Positions 27,572 to 48,148 of a DNA stretch of 64,000 bases are shown piece by piece. Each line of letters starts with the position of its first letter. Positions within the stretch are counted from its first letter, which is position 1. The notes below the pieces were generated by a model. It saw nothing but the letters and a program-made list of their open reading frames with translations, was not told where the DNA came from and made no database searches. The stretch lies in sequence record MN047793.1; one strand, written 5' to 3'. The translations under genes were made by a program, and so were the position numbers.

Positions 27572-29224
27572 TCAGGTCAAGATAAATGGCATTACAGTTT
27601 CGTCATCATCGTATTCTTCGGTGATACCTTCACGGTCATCATCACTGTATTCCCACTTACCTTCCATCTCAATTTCTGCTCCTACACTGTACATCTTAAC
27701 ATATGCACGGTCATCGTAGCTAGCCAGTTCTTCTAGAATATGGAATATAATCAAACATGCAGCAATACAGTCGTCCGTAGCTCCTGGGTTAGCAGCATAG
27801 GAGCCTTCACGTCTGACGTAGTTCTTCATCTCATGGAACAACATGTCAGAGTTTACAGTTACTAATCCTCGTTCAAATAGTTCTTTGAATTTTAATGCGG
27901 CTTTAATTTTTTTACCCTGGTTGGTGTTGATACCAATACGCTTAGCGCCAGAATCGGAAACCATCGTAGCATACATTGGTGGGTTTTCATCGTTCTCATA
28001 TAGAGACAACATACCCTGACCAACACCATTATTTTCAATGGAGAAATATACCTCTTTGGTGAATATTTCCAAGAATTTAATGATGTTCTTAAATTGGGTG
28101 TACATCACTGGTGATGACATACTATTACTTCTATATTCCATTACTTGAATAAGTGATGGGAATTCGAATACCTGAATAACTGAATAGTCATCACCGGAAC
28201 CGGTGGCCGGGTCAACACCTACAATATAGGTGGCACTCTTATCAAGTTTCTTAAAGAATTTATGTCCAGACACTCGATAAGGATATGATGGCACATACTC
28301 TGGATGATCTTTATTCGGATCGAGGGCCAAAATGTTTTCGATACGTCTCTTTAGTACTTCTTCGGCTTGAGTGATGTAATATGAATCAAATAGTGTTCTA
28401 TCTGACGATAAGAAGCGACATTCAAATTCCTGTTCCCATTTACGTTCGCCAAGCTTACTAATCATAGCATGCTTGAACTTGGCATCACGCCCTGGCGGCT
28501 GATCCCACTTTACCCATAATGGGATAAAGTCGTCTTCTACTCTTTCTTCTGGAATTCTCGCAACTGATGCGAACCACGTTCTAGCGAATAGATTACTATC
28601 TCCGTTAGGAGTGGAGGTAATAATCATTGAACCACCCGTTGAAATGGTTGGTAGAATAGAATCCCAGAATTCTTCCTGTACGTGTGGCTTAACGAACGCC
28701 AACTCGTCACAGTAAATTAATGAGATTGATAGACCACGACCAGAATCTTTAGATGTTGTGGTTGATACGATACGAGACTTGTTGTCAAATGAACATGTAT
28801 GCTTGTTCCAGTTATCGTCATCGATACCCGGCTTCAACCAATTTGGTAACTCTTCATAAGCAAATCGAATCTTAGAAATAAGCTCCATCGCATTTGATGA
28901 TTTGTTTGAAGCAATAAGAACCGTCTTTTCAGGCTGAAATATAGCATACCATAAAAGAAATGCACATGATGTTTCTGTTTTACCTGTCTGTCGTGCAGAG
29001 AGAATAATATTGAATCGATTTTCCATATACATCTTTACCAGTTCTTCCTGATAATCGTATAAGGCAAAGCTGATTTTACCACGTTTAGGATGCTTAATCT
29101 TTACGTAGTTTCTGATAAAATAAATTGGATCACGTTCACATCGATCCAATTCAATAATCTGCTCGTGGGTATATGCTACTTGTTGGTGGGCTTTCTTAAG
29201 CCCCGGATTACTACGACCGGCCAT
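27572..29224 (-). CDS. gp17: Terminase large subunit
   Basis: SARQTGKT Walker A, IYCDELAF Walker B, ITSTPNG, nuclease GVDPATG, IENN, DDCIAA. Confidence 0.95.
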   Translation of the reverse strand: MAGRSNPGLKKAHQQVAYTHEQIIELDRCERDPIYFIRNYVKIKHPKRGKISFALYDYQEELVKMYMENRFNIILSARQTGKTETSCAFLLWYAIFQPEKTVLIASNKSSNAMELISKIRFAYEELPNWLKPGIDDDNWNKHTCSFDNKSRIVSTTTSKDSGRGLSISLIYCDELAFVKPHVQEEFWDSILPTISTGGSMIITSTPNGDSNLFARTWFASVARIPEERVEDDFIPLWVKWDQPPGRDAKFKHAMISKLGERKWEQEFECRFLSSDRTLFDSYYITQAEEVLKRRIENILALDPNKDHPEYVPSYPYRVSGHKFFKKLDKSATYIVGVDPATGSGDDYSVIQVFEFPSLIQVMEYRSNSMSSPVMYTQFKNIIKFLEIFTKEVYFSIENNGVGQGMLSLYENDENPPMYATMVSDSGAKRIGINTNQGKKIKAALKFKELFERGLVTVNSDMLFHEMKNYVRREGSYAANPGATDDCIAACLIIFHILEELASYDDRAYVKMYSVGAEIEMEGKWEYSDDDREGITEEYDDDETVMPFILT

Positions 29225-29243: not shown

Positions 29244-29939
29244 TTATTTAGAGCTAACTAGTTCAAAATCTTCATCCCACACATTCTGTCCGACCTTTTT
29301 AATTATATTATCTTTGTATTCAGTATCTGTAGATACATCAGGCCATCTAATAGTTATCTTATGCTCATCTGAATAACTATCCCATACATTCTTACATACT
29401 GAGGTAAGTTTACCTGTAGCAACTAAAATTACTTTACCAGATGATGCTCTGGTCGATGCTGACACCGCATCTAATGGAATTTTAGTAAATCCATTTACAT
29501 CTAATAGAAATACGGTATTGGCACTTCTTCCTCTTCCGGTATTAATCGAATTAATGTCTAAAACGATGATTGCATCATTATCGAATTTAATACATCTGTT
29601 ATTTGATACAACAATTTTGGGCTTTAAGAAATCTGGTAGAGTATCAATAGCATTCAATAATGTAGTACGTAATTCTCCAAGCTGACTTAATTTACTGGTG
29701 ACAGCCAATGTCAGGTGGCGTGGTTTAAATAACAATTCCCATAAAATATACGCCACACTTGCATATGATGTTCCACTTTCTCTATACGCATTAACTAATA
29801 GTAGTTGTGAAGAATCTATACGATTAAGTAGTTCGACCTGATGGTCGTATAATGGTCGTACACCATCACCCATATAAGTATTAATGAAGTATTGGTGATC
29901 GGTTTCGCATTTTACATATTCGGTAATGATGTCAGTCAT
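29244..29939 (-). CDS. Terminase ATPase-domain paralog with degenerate P-loop, no nuclease domain
   Basis: CETDHQYFINTY/LYDHQ vs CERDPIYFIRNY/LYDYQ in gp17; YRESGTS vs ARQTGKT; WDEDFEL vs WEQEFEC. Confidence 0.7.
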   Translation of the reverse strand: MTDIITEYVKCETDHQYFINTYMGDGVRPLYDHQVELLNRIDSSQLLLVNAYRESGTSYASVAYILWELLFKPRHLTLAVTSKLSQLGELRTTLLNAIDTLPDFLKPKIVVSNNRCIKFDNDAIIVLDINSINTGRGRSANTVFLLDVNGFTKIPLDAVSASTRASSGKVILVATGKLTSVCKNVWDSYSDEHKITIRWPDVSTDTEYKDNIIKKVGQNVWDEDFELVSSK

Positions 29940-29993
29940 ATATAAGTCTCTAAGTTGTGAATTATATAGACGCAAATAAAAACTGTGAGCATA

Positions 29994-30017
29994 AAAAAGG
30001 GCCTTTCGGCCCTTTTT
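29994..30017 (-). terminator. Intrinsic terminator, GAAA loop
   Basis: AAAAAGGGCC-GAAA-GGCCCTTTTT. Confidence 0.8.
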
Positions 30018-30018
30018 A

Positions 30019-31161
30019 TTATCCTAGTAAGATTTCTGTGTGGGTATTATACGATTTCAGTAAATCACTTACATCGAGCAACTTATAGTAATTACTTACA
30101 TCATTTTCATATGTACCATATCGTGTTGCAAACTTTGCTGTAGGATGAAACGAATCTGGGGTAATGGATACGCCTAATGGTAACACTGTTGTATATGGAG
30201 CAAATATGTAGCCTACGTCAACTGGACCGGATTTACCCTTATAACCAATAAGAACTTTTCCGGAAAGACTACTAGCCATTGATGAATACACCTGAATGTC
30301 GTTACTTAACGTTCCTACGTGTATGATACTTGAATAACTACAATCACCACTAAATGTAGTTCCCACTGACTCAAATAGTTTGCTATTTTGTAATAATGAC
30401 ACAACATCAGGTGATGTCACTATCACATTACTATTACCGCGCAGTGTGTCGCGTGCAATAGCACGACTGTCTCGGTTAATTGATTGTATCAATTTTCCGA
30501 CTATTGCTTCTACTGAATTTGCTGAAAGTTCTACCAGTGAAGTTTTATCAGCTAATTCTGTTAGGTTATGCAATACTAAAGTTGTAATTTCATTTGAAAT
30601 TTCTGATCCAACAGCATTAACCAATTCAGTAGTAATATCTAAGTCATGTCGATTATTAAAATCTTGAGCCGCTTCAATACTATATTGAACATTAAGTTTT
30701 TTACTAAAAGCTTCTACCACATTACTAACAATTTCTAATTTAGCAGTTGGTAAAAGCTGCCCAATTCCTAACAATGTTCCGCCAGCATCAGATTTAGGCG
30801 GTGTATATTTCATAATAAACACCTTTGATACCGGTGCTGATATGGGTTGAACTCCTACAATAGGGTCCAATTCCGCATAAGCGTTAACGGCTCTAAACAC
30901 AATATCTAATGTTCTATGAGCTTCGTCACTATCTTTAGTTGATTCCATAATCAACTTTACTTGAACAGGTAATACATATTTAAGCAATTCAGACGATGGA
31001 GAGGTTTCTAGAAAATGTTCTACTTTAGCGTCCAGCTGCTTTTGTAATAAAGCCGCTTCCTTCTTAACAACCCATTTCTTAATTTCTGACAGCCACTTGC
31101 GAGTAGTTACTGGACTGAGTTTATTTAACAGAAACTCTTCAACCTTTTTTAAATTTAACAT
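30019..31161 (-). CDS. Major capsid protein paralog (gp23/gp24-like)
   Basis: IVGVQPISAP, YSIEAAQD, IARDTLRGNSN, LIGYKG, VGYIFAPY, ATRYG all align with the MCP at 45720..47111. Confidence 0.8.
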   Translation of the reverse strand: MLNLKKVEEFLLNKLSPVTTRKWLSEIKKWVVKKEAALLQKQLDAKVEHFLETSPSSELLKYVLPVQVKLIMESTKDSDEAHRTLDIVFRAVNAYAELDPIVGVQPISAPVSKVFIMKYTPPKSDAGGTLLGIGQLLPTAKLEIVSNVVEAFSKKLNVQYSIEAAQDFNNRHDLDITTELVNAVGSEISNEITTLVLHNLTELADKTSLVELSANSVEAIVGKLIQSINRDSRAIARDTLRGNSNVIVTSPDVVSLLQNSKLFESVGTTFSGDCSYSSIIHVGTLSNDIQVYSSMASSLSGKVLIGYKGKSGPVDVGYIFAPYTTVLPLGVSITPDSFHPTAKFATRYGTYENDVSNYYKLLDVSDLLKSYNTHTEILLG

Positions 31162-31211
31162 ATTAATCCTTAGTTTGATTTTATATAGTGGTACTTTTGA
31201 AACGTGAGCGC

Positions 31212-32117
31212 TTAACTAGTCCATGTAGAGTCGTGATTTACGTTGTTATCATAAATCGCCCATTCTACAATATCTTTAGCTCCAAACTCATAACCGCTTT
31301 CGGCCAGTTCACCTTTAAGGCGCCCTAATCGTGCTAGAAAGGTTTCATAATCACAATCATTATGACGAATAGTAATCATGAAGATAACTGTACCATTGTT
31401 ATGTTTTTTAAGCGCATTACGTGATAAATGTGACCCTGGGTGACGCTTACATAGGTAATAAAGACTTTCTTCCTTACCATCTGGTACCGTAACTGGAATA
31501 TGAGCTTCAAAGTAGTTGTCATCTGATCGTTCAGTAGATGAATGCGGGTGCCACGGCACCGTCTCAATCTTCTGCCTTACTACCCGATAGCCACGGTCTT
31601 CCAATTCAACAGTAATACGATCTACCTCATCGATTACCGTCTTATTAGTACCTACTAAGGTAGATGAGGTCATTACATCCTTAATAACTCCATTAGATTT
31701 TGTATGGAGGTCAAGCACTACTGGCTTTACTCCGATATCCTTACAGTCGATAAGGAACTTCTCATAAGATTCAGCCTGTTTGACTGTTACATGAATCTCA
31801 TAAGGATATGCGTCTTGACTAGGCATACTCTGAAGTTTTTCCCAATAGTAAGTCTTTTGGGTAAGGGCTTTGATCAGCTTTTCGTCAGAAATTTTACAGC
31901 GCATAGCGATTGATGCTGCTACTAGAATTACGTCAGCTACCGCAAGAGCAAGCATCTCCTTATCTACAAACTTATGGCGTGAGCCTTCAGCATTATCGTA
32001 TGGTAGGACAACCTTTGCCAGTTCTCCACCTTCTTCAAATAGTTTAAGGGCTTGTTGAGATAGCGACTTACTATCTTTCAGAGATAGTTGCCGAATGTGT
32101 TCAATTAGTTCTTTCAT
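31212..32117 (-). CDS. MazG-like NTP pyrophosphohydrolase domain fused to an uncharacterised C-terminal domain
   Basis: LKLFEEGGELAK...VADV; C-terminal YEIHVTV and YFEAHIPV. Confidence 0.6.
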   Translation of the reverse strand: MKELIEHIRQLSLKDSKSLSQQALKLFEEGGELAKVVLPYDNAEGSRHKFVDKEMLALAVADVILVAASIAMRCKISDEKLIKALTQKTYYWEKLQSMPSQDAYPYEIHVTVKQAESYEKFLIDCKDIGVKPVVLDLHTKSNGVIKDVMTSSTLVGTNKTVIDEVDRITVELEDRGYRVVRQKIETVPWHPHSSTERSDDNYFEAHIPVTVPDGKEESLYYLCKRHPGSHLSRNALKKHNNGTVIFMITIRHNDCDYETFLARLGRLKGELAESGYEFGAKDIVEWAIYDNNVNHDSTWTS

Positions 32118-32160
32118 TACAAGTTTCCATTAATGTTTAAATAGTATCATATTTCAGATA

Positions 32161-32194
32161 AAAAGAAAAGGACGATTTCTCGTCCTTTTCTTTT
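32161..32194 (-). terminator. Intrinsic terminator, GAAA loop
   Basis: AAAAGAAAAGGACGA-GAAA-TCGTCCTTTTCTTTT. Confidence 0.85.
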
Positions 32195-32211
32195 TCATAT
32201 TAGTTGAGGAA

Positions 32212-32778
32212 TCACTTACGAATTTGAATTCCGTCATCAACACCAGTAGCATAAGCCTTATTGGAATGTGTGCTGGTGATAACTTTAATTTCATCAAGGT
32301 CAATGCGTGGGAAATCATTTACCTTACTGAGCCAGAATCCTGACCATAGACGCTTAAGCTGGGTAGTGTAAGCCCGCTTTTGGTCAATCAATTCTCTCTG
32401 AGAATTAGTGAACTCTTCTCGATTGGCTTCGATGCGCTGAGATAGTCGTGTATACAATGTGGGGTCTAGGTTAGGATTCTGTTCCTTAATCCATTGCATA
32501 ACAGCACCGGACCCATTCTCGCCATAGCGACCCTGCATTGCAGCAGCATATACTTCTTTCAGGTCATCACGATACATTGTGTTAACCTGTGCCATTTCAG
32601 CAATCTGAGTAGAGTGCTTACCTAACATTTGTTGGTTATCAGTTAGCTTGGCTTTCAACGATTCCTCGGTTGAGACACCATAGTTATCATACGATACGTA
32701 AGAAACTACAGCAGTGAGGCCAACAAGAGCAGTAATAAACAGTAGAGCAGCTAGAATTACAACAGTGAGCTTATTCAT
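32212..32778 (-). CDS. Membrane-anchored helical protein (LemA-like topology)
   Basis: N-terminal TM helix then all-helical soluble domain. Confidence 0.55.
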   Translation of the reverse strand: MNKLTVVILAALLFITALVGLTAVVSYVSYDNYGVSTEESLKAKLTDNQQMLGKHSTQIAEMAQVNTMYRDDLKEVYAAAMQGRYGENGSGAVMQWIKEQNPNLDPTLYTRLSQRIEANREEFTNSQRELIDQKRAYTTQLKRLWSGFWLSKVNDFPRIDLDEIKVITSTHSNKAYATGVDDGIQIRK

Positions 32779-32779
32779 T

Positions 32780-33985
32780 TTATTTCCTTTTTAGAATTTT
32801 GTAGTAATCACTACGGGTTAGGTTTCGGTGGTTATGTACAAGTGAATCGAATGGGTTGTTATTATAAAAGTACAGCGTCATCCCTGTCAAGATAATTAAT
32901 TGAAAGATTACGAATCCAAGTAGTGCTGCCATAGATGGTGTGTATTCATCTTTAAGGTATTCATAGTCTTTCATTTCCTTACGGTGAAAATATTCTTTGA
33001 TAGATGAAGTAATCGTAGTCCCTAAAATCAATGGGTCATCAAATTTACCCGTCTTAGCAACATCTTTTATACGGTCACGTAATTGAACTGCAAGCATTTC
33101 ATTACCAGAATTTTTACCAAAGGTAATCGTATCTACCCATGTAAGTTGTCCAGATTCCATACCCATAATTACAATAACGTCATTTTTCTTACCGCCTAAC
33201 CAAGCACGCTCTAGAGCATATCTATATTCAGGCAAATTAGTTCCTACAAATACTGCAATGATATTGACTTGTTTAGTTCCACCAAGAACACGCAATTCAT
33301 TATTTAAAAATAAATTAAGCTCTTGGGCCTTCGGATACGATGCTTTTACCTGAACGATGCGATTATATCGATAATAATCATAAATTTCAGGATACGCAGG
33401 AATCATACCCGCCCACTTTGTGATGTCAGCGTCTTTCTCTTTCATTGAAAAGAGGCTTGATGGAGAAGCCATTACATAATTCAAATACGTATCACTATTT
33501 GATGCAGGCTCTCCAATTTTAACTTCACTCCATCGTGGAGGAGTGTTTACTCCTTGCCGGTCAATACGTGATATTTCCATTGTACCGACGGTAGTATACA
33601 CATTCCAATCATAGTCTACGCTATGTTCATAACATGTTGAACATGTAGTAGTACATGTCCGTTGCGCTCCTGTGCCGGAGCATGATTGATAACAATTACA
33701 TTGGTAGCTATGACTGCACGATACGGTCTGCTGCTCCTTACCAGTAACACTACCGTTTACGATAGCATAATCATACATGTCCTTATAATAAACACATGCT
33801 AGAAAAATTCCGCCTACAAGAGATGTAATAGATGCTTTAACCAGCATCTCTGTTGTACTAATCTTATGAGGAAATAGTAGATGTGCAGCCACAGACCAAA
33901 CAACAATAACAACGATGCTGATGATAAACAGAATCATGAGAGGTTTCCTAAATGTTGACTTATAATAAATCAACAAATTCTTCAT
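32780..33985 (-). CDS. Membrane protein with Cys-rich periplasmic segment and C-terminal TM helix
   Basis: Two N-terminal TM helices, CSHSYQCNC...CTTTCSTCYEH, C-terminal TM. Confidence 0.65.
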   Translation of the reverse strand: MKNLLIYYKSTFRKPLMILFIISIVVIVVWSVAAHLLFPHKISTTEMLVKASITSLVGGIFLACVYYKDMYDYAIVNGSVTGKEQQTVSCSHSYQCNCYQSCSGTGAQRTCTTTCSTCYEHSVDYDWNVYTTVGTMEISRIDRQGVNTPPRWSEVKIGEPASNSDTYLNYVMASPSSLFSMKEKDADITKWAGMIPAYPEIYDYYRYNRIVQVKASYPKAQELNLFLNNELRVLGGTKQVNIIAVFVGTNLPEYRYALERAWLGGKKNDVIVIMGMESGQLTWVDTITFGKNSGNEMLAVQLRDRIKDVAKTGKFDDPLILGTTITSSIKEYFHRKEMKDYEYLKDEYTPSMAALLGFVIFQLIILTGMTLYFYNNNPFDSLVHNHRNLTRSDYYKILKRK

Positions 33986-33993
33986 GTCAAGTA

Positions 33994-34143
33994 CTATCGT
34001 ACATGTGGATCAACACCTGTTCCTGAACAGAACATGCACGTGGTTGGACCATTCTCTTTACACGCTTCACATATAACGGTCCCATCACACGTTTCGCATA
34101 GCAATACTCCACTACCTAAACAAATTAAACACTCATCATGCAT
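33994..34143 (-). CDS. 49-aa DnaJ-type zinc-finger mini-protein (not in ORF track)
   Basis: MHDECLICLGSGVLLCETCDGTVICEACKENGPTTCMFCSGTGVDPHVR: four CxxC, two with CxxCxGxG. Confidence 0.75.
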   Translation of the reverse strand: MHDECLICLGSGVLLCETCDGTVICEACKENGPTTCMFCSGTGVDPHVR

Positions 34144-34876
34144 CAATATAGTCCACTGAGTGATAATTTGACATAGTTCTTTTCATAATTGAATAAGCAT
34201 ACGGACTTATAATAACAAGCCGTGGTACTACTTCCTCGGTAACAGTAATTCTGTCCAAGGCATTAGCCTCATACATTCCATCATAAGGCATATATGACGG
34301 TTTATTAAGTTTTCTGTGTCTGAGTGAAGCTATATCCGCCTGTATTCTATAAAAGTTATCATCAGTCATGGCTCCGCATGGATCGTCTATACAGATTGTA
34401 TTGATATCATATGGTATGCGATACCCTCGGTATACACTAGACATAGTTTCCCATTCGAGCATTGTCTTATTGTATTCATTGGAAATTATATTACTACCCC
34501 TGGTGCGTGCTAAGTCATTACGTAAGTACATATATGCAGTTTCATACATATCTTTACTATACGCATAATGGTGATTATTAGGCACTATTAATAAATTACT
34601 TATATTATAATAAACGGAAATTTCCCATAGCAAATAATTCGCTATAATTGTACTAATTCCTCTCCCACGGTTAGTATTATGTGTATTAATAAACACATAA
34701 TCGTTAGACAACATCGAATCTAAAATTCGTTGCTGTAATTTGTTAATTCGCCTACCTTGAAGGCCCATATGAAGCATGATGGAGGTATTTGCACATCTAG
34801 ATAACATAAAAAATCCTACATTTGACTGTAGGATTTTTTCATACTTATTACGACTTGTCAATACTTGGCTCGCCAA
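34136..34876 (-). CDS. Second, more degenerate terminase-ATPase-like protein
   Basis: NKLQQRILDSM...NRGRGISTIIANYLLWE parallels LYDHQVELL...RESGTSYASVAYILWE; ICIDD at Walker B position. Confidence 0.45.
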   Translation of the reverse strand: MASQVLTSRNKYEKILQSNVGFFMLSRCANTSIMLHMGLQGRRINKLQQRILDSMLSNDYVFINTHNTNRGRGISTIIANYLLWEISVYYNISNLLIVPNNHHYAYSKDMYETAYMYLRNDLARTRGSNIISNEYNKTMLEWETMSSVYRGYRIPYDINTICIDDPCGAMTDDNFYRIQADIASLRHRKLNKPSYMPYDGMYEANALDRITVTEEVVPRLVIISPYAYSIMKRTMSNYHSVDYIDA

Positions 34877-36558
34877 CGTCCATTTATAATATGAATTAGA
34901 GTGCGCTTACCATCTGGGTACACCACGGCATGCGTAGTTAGCCATGAACTAGGGCCGCTATTATAGCCTAAGTCCAGTTCGCTACTAGTACCCACTTGAT
35001 AAACGCCTTCATAAATTCCTGGGCTATGACTATGACCAATGATTGCCTTGGCTCCAATCTTACTCATATTCTGAATTGATCCGCGAGCACCGTTTGGTCC
35101 TTGGTCGCCATGGAATCCCAGTTCGATATTACCTACTGTCAAGGATTCATCACGCTTTAAGAAATGGGTATTGTCCGCAGCCTTTAAACCGGTCTGCTGA
35201 TCTGGATTGAAGCACCAGAATTCAAATGGATCAAACGCAGAGAACCTACCATTACCAGTCTGCTTGACACTCTTATACTGGTTATATTTCATATAGTAAA
35301 AGAATCGTGCATTCTTTGGATCATTTAATGGATTAGCTTCGCGTAGCCAACGGTCAAATGCTTCGTCGTGATTACTCTTAACGATAACATTTAATGATTC
35401 TGGATCATTGTACTTGTCCACCAAGTCCGCAGAAATTTGTAGTTCCGCTTCAACATCATCGTTACCAATTAAATGCTTTGCGAAGTTAAGTAAATCGTCT
35501 CCACGGTGATGGTGATTACGTGAATAGAAGTCAGTAAGGTCATGGAACACGCGCATCTCTGGACGTAAGACTTTGACGATACTATCTTCATTTGAGTAGG
35601 TAGCAGCTTCTACTTGCTTATCCAGAAACATTGCATGCGTATCGCCGGTCACTAATGCTGCTACACGATGGCCTGTAGTAATTTCATTAGTTGTGTAATA
35701 CGAGTCTAGATCATAGAATGATCCATCTGAATGGGAATGGACGTGACGAATATGGAATTCTTCATCAGTTACTTCCACTACCAACGCAGCAAGACTGTGG
35801 TGGAACTCACCCTTAAATCCTGCTTTGGAATCAGTATAGTTAGGGATAGTTACCGCACCAGTTGTAGTAAGAATCTTAGGAAGTTCCTTATTTGGCGTAG
35901 GTACAGTCTTTAGTTGAACCTTTGGGTGTCCGAACACTGCTGATGATGAACCAGTATATCCCTCAAATCCTGAAAGAGGTTGTACGGCTGTTGGTTGAAT
36001 CTTAACACCGCCGACAAGTACTAATTCTGGACAGATTTTTAGATTACCACGAACCATATACGGGTCTAATGCACTATCCCAAGTCTCATAATCTTTATCT
36101 GTGAATACTGATGTAGGATTCTTGTATCGATATGGAATGACTAAAAGTTCTGCGTTATTTTCTTCGCAATAATTTAATAGCGAAGCAAAAAACGGTTGAT
36201 GGATAGGTGTGTTATTTTGCGCGGAAGTAATCAGGTAACGGCCGACGCGACGTGGACCATCTGATTTAATCGTGTCAACGATGCTGCTAGCAGATGCGAT
36301 CTTACTTTTTGCTTCAGCAATTTCTTTACGAAACTTATCAAGTTTATCTGGAGTTAGCGTGGACACGCCATCTTTAAGTTTTGGTAGAGATACACCAGAT
36401 TGGTACTTGACGTTTAGGACACGACGCCTAATAGAATCTGCTTTGATTCCGAAGAAATCGGCAAGATCATTATTGGTCCACTTGTGTTTATGTGCGGTGC
36501 GATAATGTAGAACGAAATCTTCTAACTCTTGACGACGCTTTATATCTTTATGAGACAT
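34858..36558 (-). CDS. Large calcineurin-like metallophosphoesterase/nuclease with N-terminal HTH-like region (T5 A1-like)
   Basis: ITSAQNNTP, GDTH, HDLTDF, SNHD, FHGD, GHSHS. Confidence 0.65.
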   Translation of the reverse strand: MSHKDIKRRQELEDFVLHYRTAHKHKWTNNDLADFFGIKADSIRRRVLNVKYQSGVSLPKLKDGVSTLTPDKLDKFRKEIAEAKSKIASASSIVDTIKSDGPRRVGRYLITSAQNNTPIHQPFFASLLNYCEENNAELLVIPYRYKNPTSVFTDKDYETWDSALDPYMVRGNLKICPELVLVGGVKIQPTAVQPLSGFEGYTGSSSAVFGHPKVQLKTVPTPNKELPKILTTTGAVTIPNYTDSKAGFKGEFHHSLAALVVEVTDEEFHIRHVHSHSDGSFYDLDSYYTTNEITTGHRVAALVTGDTHAMFLDKQVEAATYSNEDSIVKVLRPEMRVFHDLTDFYSRNHHHRGDDLLNFAKHLIGNDDVEAELQISADLVDKYNDPESLNVIVKSNHDEAFDRWLREANPLNDPKNARFFYYMKYNQYKSVKQTGNGRFSAFDPFEFWCFNPDQQTGLKAADNTHFLKRDESLTVGNIELGFHGDQGPNGARGSIQNMSKIGAKAIIGHSHSPGIYEGVYQVGTSSELDLGYNSGPSSWLTTHAVVYPDGKRTLIHIINGRWRAKY

Positions 36559-36569
36559 GTTATTTCCTG

Positions 36570-37064
36570 TTATTCTTTATCTTTCTTTACTTCTACTACT
36601 TCAACATCAATGGTGTTCTTTTCTTCAGCTTCACGTGCATCACGAAGCTGTTTTAGTAAATCATTACGATCCATAACAAGTAGAGTTTGTGAGTTTGTGC
36701 TTTTACTAGCAGCATTCTTTCTCGCAATAAGTCTATCTTTGTTTTCTTTAAGTTGTGCCTTTTTTGATAATGCCGCCAGAGCAGTATTCAATAATTGATT
36801 ACTTACTTCGGTAAGGCGAGCAACTAACTTAGTGTCCGCAGTGTCAACCATTTCTTGGATATTATCATATCCACTTAAGGCAGCGTCTGCGATTTCTTGG
36901 AAAGATGATTCAATTTCCTTATCCTTTGGATCAAACTCTTCATAATCTGCAATCTCTGTATTACGTTGGTACTTAATTACCTCCGTAGTTCCTGGCTCTA
37001 TGTTCAAAAAATCCTCTAACGGGTTTTCTGCAAGTTTTTCGATTATGTCAATTTTGCGAATCAT
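36570..37064 (-). CDS. Probable terminase small subunit (gp16-like)
   Basis: ARLTEVSNQLL...TNSQTLLVMDRNDLLKQL resembles gp16-type R..EV...L....NN.L~G...DL.K.L; AATAAATA at 37087..37094. Confidence 0.5.
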   Translation of the reverse strand: MIRKIDIIEKLAENPLEDFLNIEPGTTEVIKYQRNTEIADYEEFDPKDKEIESSFQEIADAALSGYDNIQEMVDTADTKLVARLTEVSNQLLNTALAALSKKAQLKENKDRLIARKNAASKSTNSQTLLVMDRNDLLKQLRDAREAEEKNTIDVEVVEVKKDKE

Positions 37065-45719: not shown

Positions 45720-47111
45720 TTAGACTTGGCTTAGGTTTAGGACATTTAGACGACCGTAGTAGTCGGCTGAGTTACCTAGTGACGTGGTTGGGTCAGTGAA
45801 GGCTAGCTTCGCGTAACGTGTCATTAGGGACATGCTTGGGTTGTAGGTATCAGCATTTAGCACAACACCGCTTGCCATTAGAGGAATGTATGGGCAGTAG
45901 AAGTAGCCTGCGTCAGTTTCACCGTTACCACCCTTGTAACCTAGTAGGATACGGTTTGTTGCGCTTGCGCCTAGTTGCTCTTGGTTCCAAATGTAGCTGT
46001 AAACCTTGATGGTGCCGTTTAGAGTACCAACCAACATTGTGTTGTTCGGACCCTTGAATGAACCAGCAACCGCAGGAGCGAACACAGCCTTAGCAGCTGA
46101 CTGTAGGATTGACACGATGACTGGAGAAACTACGATGTAGTTAGCAGCACCACGACGAGTCTTACGAGCGATTTCGTTCGCGATTTCGTTGATGTATACG
46201 GCTAGGTGTGAGTAACGGTCACCTGACCATGCTGGAGCATAAGCACCACCGGCTGAAGCGTTGAAATCGAAGGTGCGAACAGTACCAGCTAGGCCGTATA
46301 GGTCCTGGATGATTTCTGAGTCTAGTTCCTGTACGATTTCTGCTGAAAGAACCTTAGTCATTTCTGACTCTAGGTCTAGGCCGTGCTGGCTGTTTAGGTC
46401 CTGCATAGCTTCGATTGTCCAACCAGCCTGTAGCTTACGTGAACCAGCTTCGACAGCCTGTGAGATGACCTTTAGGCTCATCTTACGACCACCTGAAGAC
46501 TCTAGGTGTCCGCCACCGCCACCTAGTAGTGAACCACCTACTGGTACGCTGTAAGCACCGAAGTTCATGGTACCAGCATCGTATGAAGTTACGTTGTCAG
46601 CAGCCGGTGAACCCCATGCAGTACCTTGACCAGTAGCAGCATTGATGTTACCCGGTGAAGCTGGGCCTAGGCCTGAAGAACCGGCAGGAACGCCAGTACC
46701 GATTGTGCCTGAGTAGAACTGACGGATTGGCTTGGCGTTACCGAAAGCTTCGTCACCAGCTACGATGTCATATCCACCAAATAGTGAACGTGATGCAGCG
46801 TGCTGTGCGTCTTCAGCGTAGGTATAGCGCATGGTGTAAGCCTGTGAAACTGGGCCTGACATCGGCTGCACACCGACTAGTTCTGTTGCGATGGTGCCTG
46901 GGATAATACGGCGAATCATCGGAAGAAGAGTCTTACGGAAATTAGCAATATCAGCAGTTTGTACAGCACCGGCAGAAGCAGTTTCGTTTAGAAGAGCAGA
47001 CTTCTGGTTTTCTAGTAGCGGAGCTACGATGCTTTTCTGGTCAGGTGATAGACCTTCTAGTAGAGCGGACTTAGCTTCCTGCCAGCCAGTGGTTAATAGT
47101 TCGGTAGACAT
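45720..47111 (-). CDS. gp23: Major capsid protein
   Basis: LVGVQPMSGP, WTIEAMQDL, IARKTRRGAAN, LGYKG, GYFYCPY, MTRYA; AGGAG SD. Confidence 0.95.
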   Translation of the reverse strand: MSTELLTTGWQEAKSALLEGLSPDQKSIVAPLLENQKSALLNETASAGAVQTADIANFRKTLLPMIRRIIPGTIATELVGVQPMSGPVSQAYTMRYTYAEDAQHAASRSLFGGYDIVAGDEAFGNAKPIRQFYSGTIGTGVPAGSSGLGPASPGNINAATGQGTAWGSPAADNVTSYDAGTMNFGAYSVPVGGSLLGGGGGHLESSGGRKMSLKVISQAVEAGSRKLQAGWTIEAMQDLNSQHGLDLESEMTKVLSAEIVQELDSEIIQDLYGLAGTVRTFDFNASAGGAYAPAWSGDRYSHLAVYINEIANEIARKTRRGAANYIVVSPVIVSILQSAAKAVFAPAVAGSFKGPNNTMLVGTLNGTIKVYSYIWNQEQLGASATNRILLGYKGGNGETDAGYFYCPYIPLMASGVVLNADTYNPSMSLMTRYAKLAFTDPTTSLGNSADYYGRLNVLNLSQV

Positions 47112-47191
47112 TTTTAACTCCTATGTTATGTAAATTTGTCTTAAAATTTGAAACGTTTATTACTTTATACAGCCTAAATAATCAGCTTAAA

Positions 47192-48148
47192 TTAGTGGTT
47201 AATGCCGGCTAGACGCTGAAGATGTAGAGCACCTTCACTTAGTTGTGCCGGGGCTGGTTTTTCTTCTGGTTTAACACCTTCAGAATCGCCAGTTACCAAT
47301 ACAACTGGTTCTTGCACGGGTTCAGCCACTGGGGCTTGCTCACCTTCGGCTAGTACAGGTTCCACAGGAGTGGTACTTTCCTTCTCCGAACTATCTACAC
47401 TTTCGTGTAATACACGACCAATAAACTTCTGGTAGGATTCTTCAAGCTTATCCGTAGGGACAGTCTTTAGAATTGCTTCCATAATTTCGCGAGGGTGACC
47501 CTGTAGTGAAGCTAGGGTTTCATCAAGCTTGGTCTTACGCTCTAAACGAGCAGTTTCTTTTGCAGCTTCAGCAAGCGCTTCATCGCGTGTTGCTAATTCT
47601 TTACGGGCTTCTTCTAGTTGAGCAGTTAGCTCTTCTACACCATTATCAGCAGCAGTGAATTGCTCAACTTCAGACTGGAATGCTTCGAAGATTTTACGAC
47701 CGAGATTGATTTTACGAACTTCGGCAATAGATTCTTTTAGCTCTTCAACTTCTTCAGTTAGGCGCATTTCTAGGAATGTATCTAGACGCTCAACTAATGT
47801 GGTCATATCTTGTTGTACTGCTTCAGCCAACTTTGCACGTTCTGTAACTAATTCAGCGGCCTTTTCAACTTCAAGATCGCGGAACTTTTCGATGTCATCA
47901 CGTAGCTCTTCTAACTGTTCCTTTAACATCTCTTCAACCTTAGTATCGAGGGCTTCAATTAAAGCCTCACGGTCAGCAGCAAACTGCGTAGCGTATTCGA
48001 CAACTAGGGCATCCGTTTTTTCAGCAACTTGACGATTGACTTCAGTATCAACCGCTTCGTTCATTGCAGTCTGGATAGTGTCGGCAAGTTCAGTACGAGC
48101 TTCCTCGTTCAGTACTTCCGATAAAACCTTTTCTAGTAGTTCTTTCAT
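47192..48148 (-). CDS. gp22: Prohead scaffolding/core protein
   Basis: Acidic coiled coil immediately upstream of MCP; GRKIFEAF, KFIGRVL; start ATG 48148 with GGAG. Confidence 0.8.
   Translation of the reverse strand: MKELLEKVLSEVLNEEARTELADTIQTAMNEAVDTEVNRQVAEKTDALVVEYATQFAADREALIEALDTKVEEMLKEQLEELRDDIEKFRDLEVEKAAELVTERAKLAEAVQQDMTTLVERLDTFLEMRLTEEVEELKESIAEVRKINLGRKIFEAFQSEVEQFTAADNGVEELTAQLEEARKELATRDEALAEAAKETARLERKTKLDETLASLQGHPREIMEAILKTVPTDKLEESYQKFIGRVLHESVDSSEKESTTPVEPVLAEGEQAPVAEPVQEPVVLVTGDSEGVKPEEKPAPAQLSEGALHLQRLAGINH

Follow-up and report, generated by a model that had tools for sequence, protein, structure and literature searches.

Putatively dead paralogues of the terminase ATPase domain in the Xanthomonas jumbo phage Xoo-sp13, with a possible role beside the packaging motor

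Besides a complete large terminase subunit (TerL), the Xanthomonas jumbo phage Xoo-sp13 (MN047793.1, 309 kb) carries two shorter genes that resemble only the ATPase part of that protein and have altered P-loops, which raises the question of where they come from and why they are kept. The stretch analysed, hereafter the window, comprises 64,000 nucleotides, and the region was 100% identical to Xoo-sp13; coordinates are window positions (record position minus 124000), and every gene discussed is located on the minus strand. The genuine TerL (27572..29224, 550 residues) has ATPase and RNase H-like nuclease domains (PF03237 and PF17289), and its relatives are 70-77% identical. Copy 1 (29244..29939, 231 residues, Xoosp13_242) was assigned as an ATPase-domain-only TerL paralogue on the basis of homology, model and motif alignment, and copy 2 (34136..34807, 223 residues, Xoosp13_247, 'hypothetical' in GenBank) as an eroded TerL-ATPase-like protein by profile comparison, hidden Markov model (HMM) and ESM Atlas. 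Sequence comparisons indicate that both copies descend from the N-terminal ATPase domain of a T4-type large terminase and have lost the nuclease domain and two residues of ATP hydrolysis. With regard to function, we tentatively favour, at somewhat under an even chance, a non-catalytic partner of the packaging motor, for which binding to TerL and an effect on packaging are what we infer.

The BLASTP alignment of copy 1 with the TerL of the same phage covered residues 18 to 268, the whole ATPase domain (27% identity, E 4e-23), and copy 1 was matched by phrog_5989, 'terminase large subunit' (4.4e-28), and by the T4 gp17 ATPase domain 2o0h (5.7e-9). Its AlphaFold2 (AF2) model, built on an alignment of orthologues and TerL N-domains, had a pLDDT of 90, and the best fold match was the gp17 ATPase 2o0j (TM 0.86, E 3.9e-14). 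The original prediction, made from the letters alone, that copy 1 aligns along the whole gp17 ATPase domain was confirmed, and the motif losses that it had listed (R-E-S-G-T-S for R-Q-T-G-K-T, L-L-D-V-N-G for C-D-E-L-A-F, no nuclease domain) read as claimed. Walker A is S-A-R-Q-T-G-K-T in TerL and A-Y-R-E-S-G-T-S in copy 1, with Lys replaced by Thr; Walker B is I-Y-C-D-E-L in TerL and F-L-L-D-V in copy 1, with the catalytic Glu replaced by Val. Copy 1 does retain the Q-motif Gln, the arginine of G-R-G and, in the P-loop, Arg and Gly. Copy 1 ends at the ATPase/nuclease boundary and has no nuclease domain, PF17289 matching only the real TerL; neither copy was detected in the PF03237 search.

In comparison with T4 gp17 (2o0h, 2o0j, 3cpe), copy 1 shares the fold, the Q motif, the P-loop Arg and Gly, the arginine finger and the [ST]-[ST]-G version of the C-motif, but it is without the nuclease, the Walker A Lys and the catalytic Glu, and it evolves 20-100 times faster. 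It fails as a TerL on Walker A Lys, Walker B Asp-Glu and nuclease domain but has the TerL ATPase fold, and is, as its motifs predict, a catalytically dead, nuclease-less derivative of the TerL ATPase domain. The GenBank label of Xoosp13_242, 'terminase small subunit', was rejected: all function-labelled PHROG matches of copy 1 are 'terminase large subunit'. Judged by these matches the gene is a TerL ATPase paralogue, and the gene resembling a small terminase subunit (TerS) is instead Xoosp13_249 (36570-37064; phrog_445, 6e-17), for which no function is annotated in GenBank. A readthrough or frameshift fusion of copy 1 and TerL was also rejected, given the TAA stop of copy 1, the spacer before terL, which starts 19 nt past that stop in a different frame, and the complete ATPase domain of TerL itself.

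Word-index and IMG/VR searches with copy 1 returned only copy 1 itself. Since these direct searches yielded no orthologues, terL neighbourhoods of relatives were collected from Logan, ENA and JGI contigs with TerL 63-77% identical, giving about 15 XacN1-like loci. An ATPase-only TerL paralogue is located directly upstream of terL in six of them (the window, L012, L021, L023, L026 and L028), at 0-40 nt or overlapping the terL start; L026 has a gap of 3 bases, and L028 an overlap of the stop with the terL start. The Walker A Lys is replaced in all six members (T/L/L/G/V/V) and the catalytic Glu is likewise absent from 6/6; at Walker B the orthologues have D/E followed by S/A/T/I, against L-L-D-V in copy 1. 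On the other hand, the P-loop Arg and Gly and a common end at alignment column E-[FY]-E-L are kept in 6/6, the Q-motif Gln is kept in most, and 12 core positions are invariant across paralogues and TerLs. The Arg of G-R-G, some 10 residues ahead of Walker B, is conserved in three of the six members and is Lys in one; by extrapolation from a HMMER alignment it would correspond to R139, the trans-acting arginine finger of P74-26.

The six members grouped as a single clade (99/94), in which the terminal branches measured 2.5-10 substitutions per site; those of TerL measured 0.01-0.5. Pairwise identity of copy 1 with the four orthologues that could be aligned by BLASTP was 25-29%, where that of TerL was 73-77%; L023 was found by HMM only. 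XacN1 ORF256, which occupies the same place as copy 1, was discarded as its counterpart, the sequence being unrelated, and in L024 neither the copy-1 nor the copy-2 family was found.

Upstream of copy 1, a terminator-like GC-rich hairpin followed by a T run was read in the sequence directly after the gp23-like gene (29993..30017). A motif search revealed CTATATAA, which resembles a T4 late promoter, at 29962..29969, some 25 nt before copy 1 starts. This candidate late-promoter motif, similar to T4 TATAAATA, has only three occurrences in the 64 kb (29962, 31181 and 48194), all on the minus strand, which is the coding strand, and 20-50 nt upstream of the starts of copy 1, the gp23-like gene and a gene starting at 48148. 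With such a motif before copy 1, copy 1 and terL look as if they might form one bicistronic unit.

Copy 2 (34136..34876 in the original prediction) had been taken for a more eroded copy with R-G-R-G-I-S-T at the P-loop. The open reading frame (ORF) is intact and has N-R-G-R-G-I-S-T at that position. BLASTP of copy 2 against TerL gave no match and phrog_5989 scored only 0.0077, so that profiles were needed to establish its ancestry. By hhalign, the copy-2 family matched the copy-1 family with 93% probability (E 3.6e-7, 138 colinear columns) and the TerL N-domains with E 1.8e-4 over 51 columns. The HMM built from this family matched copy 1 (6.5e-7), the phiM12 truncated terminase (4e-5) and the TerL of CBB (2.2e-4), with two true TerLs matched in all. 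The look-alikes of copy 2 in the ESM Atlas were all terminase N-domain clusters (Terminase_6N), with feature scores of 0.95-0.96 and structural TM of 0.67-0.70, and this placement among terminase N-domains holds both by sequence features and by the Atlas's own model.

The consensus of the copy-2 family comprises a Q motif, a P-loop R-G-x-G-I-[ST]-T, an R-G ahead of a hydrophobic strand with Asp at its end, and one more strand after it, which is the order of the TerL ATPase motifs minus the Lys; the Walker A Lys is absent in 8/8 members, and the Q-motif Gln and P-loop Gly are invariant. In copy 2 the Walker B position reads I-D-D, and the protein, which has no nuclease domain, stops where the ATPase domain ends. 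We regard copy 2 as very probably derived from a TerL ATPase and nearer to the copy-1 family than to TerL, and its fold, as modelled, is probably that of the TerL ATPase. The ancestry claimed for it was therefore upheld through the profiles, together with the R-G-R-G-I-S-T motif, but the start was not: ATG 34807 is preferred to TTG 34876 because a hairpin at 34808-34839 ends directly before this ATG, the homologues align from that Met, and it is the GenBank start. The hairpin, read in the sequence, is a perfect one of 13 bp with a T run, between the T5-A1-like gene (34858-36558) and the ATG. The gene most likely extends over 34136-34807 (223 residues) and not over 34136-34876.

Word-index and IMG/VR searches with copy 2 also returned only itself. 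Exhaustive HMMER searching found one library-wide relative, P0003 (30% identity), in the syntenic Logan contig L005, and the N-terminal part of copy 2 matched XacN1 ORF261 (E 1e-5). Members of the family are present in eight genomes, in the same place after the A1-like gene. By sequence the copy-2 family is restricted to XacN1-like phages, with no counterpart in Rak2-like phages or phiM12; it represents a variant further eroded than the copy-1 family, located elsewhere in the genome, and no earlier description of it was found.

In XacN1-type phages the homologues of copy 2 are chimeric (L020:3650-4435, L022:3639-4490 and L002:16583-17368, the last being XacN1 ORF261). In them a TerL-ATPase-like body is followed by 40-50 C-terminal residues corresponding to the motif at the N-terminus of gp23/gp24 (V-G-V-Q-P-M; PF07068 positions 6-51), and a tblastn search matched this C-terminal part to the capsid genes of over 1600 T4-like phages. 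Such a structure suggests truncation and fusion of an adjacent gene for a capsid paralogue.

Are these genes or debris? All 14 family members (six copy-1, eight copy-2) have open frames at 18-30% identity; by our estimate, with about 0.066 stop codons per random codon for the base composition here, a neutral frame of 223 codons would be open with a probability of about 2e-7. Twelve full-length natural variants of the L028 orthologue have about 11 differing sites and no nonsense change. Between L005 and Xoo-sp13 the A1-like gene is 95% and the MazG-like gene 82% identical, against 29% for copy 2. Frames that stay open at 18-30% identity point to selection maintaining both families as proteins, and this selection for a protein, as deduced from the sequences, is loose; the copies are not pseudogenes, in agreement with the intact frames reported originally. 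An explanation without protein function would make copy 1 the remnant of a partial tandem duplication of terL, now a leader ORF whose frame is open only because terL translation or transcription passes through it, and copy 2 debris of recombination or homing. Frequent losses, the chimeras with a capsid gene fragment and the character of terL as a hot spot of mobile elements (inteins in P0073 and also in PMC5259590, the split terL of L018, GIY-YIG genes nearby) fit this explanation. We nevertheless consider it unlikely: 12 core positions are invariant across paralogues and TerLs, the copy 1 model folds confidently, every member stops at one and the same domain boundary, the copy-2 family, although located elsewhere than upstream of terL, is open in eight genomes with the Q-motif Gln and P-loop Gly invariant, and an unconstrained frame at such divergence would be closed.

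Related genes are known from other phages. Buttimer et al. 2017 (PMC5259590) reported that phage CBB has two proteins with gp17 domains, one of them, CBB_274, a truncated large terminase, and that a truncated large terminase is common to Rak2-like phages, phiM12 and phiN3. The CBB_274 type (CBB, 121Q, Rak2, GAP32 and the Sinorhizobium phages phiM12 and phiN3) is, like copy 1, an ATPase-only TerL paralogue, co-oriented and directly upstream of terL; copy 2, in contrast, is at another locus. An HMM of the six copy-1 members recovered the ORFs upstream of terL in phiM12 (4e-36) and CBB (3e-13) and, weakly, in 121Q. In a joint tree with CBB, 121Q and phiM12, all nine paralogues were placed on one side of a branch (74/85), with very long branches for which long-branch attraction is possible. 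The copies of CBB and 121Q have no Walker A Lys. The phiM12 truncated terminase (L038:2265-2885) keeps Walker A G-K-T and Walker B D-E and may still be an active ATPase; with such a copy in the family, the ancestor was probably an ATPase-only paralogue with activity, and catalysis was lost later on. The published record of the CBB_274 type (PMC5259590) describes an incomplete domain only, with no motif analysis and no function. Copy 1 appears to be a new member of this family already noted in the literature, to which are added here a resolved case with orthologues, the second eroded family and the GenBank correction.

T4 itself encodes vs.8, an ATPase-only homologue of the gp17 ATPase domain, which activates the defence protein EcAvs2 and does not block it (bioRxiv 10.64898/2026.04.30.721860). 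Like the copies described here, it is a short free-standing TerL-ATPase-like protein beside a real terminase in a T4-type phage; unlike them, it has Walker A G-K-S and Walker B D-E intact and does not adjoin gene 17. A relationship was not retained: hhalign gave E 0.053 and 0.64 against the two families, and vs.8 is apparently independent.

The role of packaging-motor partner fits copy 1 best because of its fixed place upstream of terL, its fold, the P-loop Arg and Gly and an arginine finger in most members; the suggestion of a regulatory subunit in the original prediction survives in this form, as a tentative proposal. Copy 1 would dock on TerL via the side-by-side ATPase interface found between neighbouring TerL subunits of the ring. 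It would not hydrolyse ATP itself, most members would still be able to present the trans-acting arginine, and copy 1 would tune the assembly or the firing of the motor. The family of copy 1 is old, fast-evolving and probably co-transcribed with terL, and copy 2, very probably a further-eroded offshoot of the same fold at the second locus, may serve a related purpose.

Clamp-loader delta and delta-prime and F1 alpha are known examples of paralogues that are dead or do not hydrolyse ATP, yet retain fold and interface and work beside catalytic subunits. These are essential, conserved and stoichiometric, while the Xoo-sp13 copies are dispensable in many relatives and fast-evolving, and their complex formation is hypothetical. 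Several observations weigh against a motor role. Copy 1 is missing at nine of the about 15 XacN1-like loci, XacN1 included, having been lost repeatedly; it is thus dispensable, and motor subunits seldom are. It also evolves very fast, as if the constraint on it were weak or shifting. The arginine finger has been lost in L026 and L023, and L023 is also without the Walker B Asp. Copy 2 does not adjoin terL, being 4.9 kb away beside the A1-like gene; its AF2 model is poor (pLDDT 54), with many RecA-like ATPases tied at Z 6.6-6.9 (terminases at 6.6-6.8, gp17 at 6.8), and a Foldseek search with this model gave no significant match. Finally, mutual substitution of the two families was rejected: among the nine genomes in which both places are visible, two have both families, two only copy 1, four only copy 2 and one neither, a pattern no different from independence.

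Rapid divergence and lineage-specific loss would also fit a weapon against other phages, in which relatives infecting the same cell would have their packaging rings poisoned by the dead subunit as a dominant negative, while the phage's own TerL would tolerate it. A dead subunit with the ring interface kept is the classic design of such an inhibitor. Copy 1, however, is expressed in cis, directly with its own terL, and the TerL N-domains of the clade are 76-85% identical, too alike for much discrimination between self and non-self; this explanation is considered quite improbable.

The same fast evolution and patchy presence are typical of genes of conflict with the host, and the hypervariable island from the A1-like gene to terL also has a fast-evolving capsid paralogue, homing endonucleases and an RNA ligase. 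In an anti-defence explanation the dead ATPase domains, and perhaps the gp23-like paralogue too, would bind sensors of the Avs1-3 or Upx type without triggering them, or would shield TerL, and EcAvs2 and Upx recognise the TerL ATPase domain by itself (bioRxiv 10.64898/2026.04.30.721860). In the EcAvs2-terminase structure, though, it is the ATP held in the active site of the terminase that seals the interface (bioRxiv 10.64898/2026.04.30.721860), and a P-loop without Lys is probably unable to supply that ATP. The one ATPase-only TerL-like protein tested, T4 vs.8, activates EcAvs2; there is no precedent for a binder that does not permit sensor oligomerisation; no defence or anti-defence model was matched (PADLOC); and the fixed, terL-coupled position of copy 1 is left unexplained. 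Anti-defence mimicry is accordingly held to be unlikely, and the proposal that the copies are Avs decoys found no support, with no match to defence or anti-defence families and the EcAvs2 interface depending on the terminase-bound ATP. Its extension to the whole island from the A1-like gene to terL, as an anti-immunity 'mimic' locus in which the dead TerL-ATPase families and the gp23-like paralogue are decoys soaking up or jamming bacterial sensors of the conserved terminase and capsid folds, is rather improbable.

In the order of transcription, the region contains a DnaB-like helicase gene, the TerS-like gene, the T5-A1-like gene, copy 2 and a small zinc-finger ORF, followed by genes for a 401-residue membrane protein, a 188-residue virion protein and a MazG-like protein, the 380-residue gp23-like paralogue, copy 1 and TerL. 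The zinc-finger ORF (33994-34146, minus strand, 50 residues) is unannotated; it has four CxxC(x)G zinc-knuckle motifs of the DnaJ/BSD2 cysteine-rich type (BSD2_CRD 5e-5, DnaJ_CXXCXGXG 0.02), its start overlaps the copy 2 stop, and it is absent from the syntenic contig L005. The gp23-like capsid paralogue (30019-31161, minus strand, 380 residues) covers PF07068 positions 129-354, and the real major capsid protein is encoded at 45723-47120 on the minus strand (full-length Gp23 match, 3e-100). Only about half of the XacN1-like loci have the paralogue, which is 22-37% identical where neighbour genes are 48-95% identical; judged by its sequence, it might be a vertex protein of the gp24 type or else a further fast-evolving accessory copy.

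Further observations concern terL and its surroundings in relatives. Among the more distant ones, terL of L018 (L018:5539-8045) is split into pieces of 129 and 349 residues by an insert of about 1 kb, and P0073 is a TerL of 956 residues with LAGLIDADG/intein domains. One XacN1-like relative has a trio of PrkA, DUF444 and SpoVR genes (L026:1566-6332) in the variable island a few kb upstream of terL.

Packaging motors are usually treated as a ring of one ATPase, TerL, together with the small terminase. A dead, selectively maintained TerL paralogue, as it is read here, recurs beside terL in Rak2-like, XacN1-like and phiM12-like phages. If the favoured reading, a non-catalytic partner of the packaging motor, is true, some large phages would run or regulate their motor with a non-catalytic subunit; alternatively, copies of a fold sensed by host immunity would be used in the conflict with the host.

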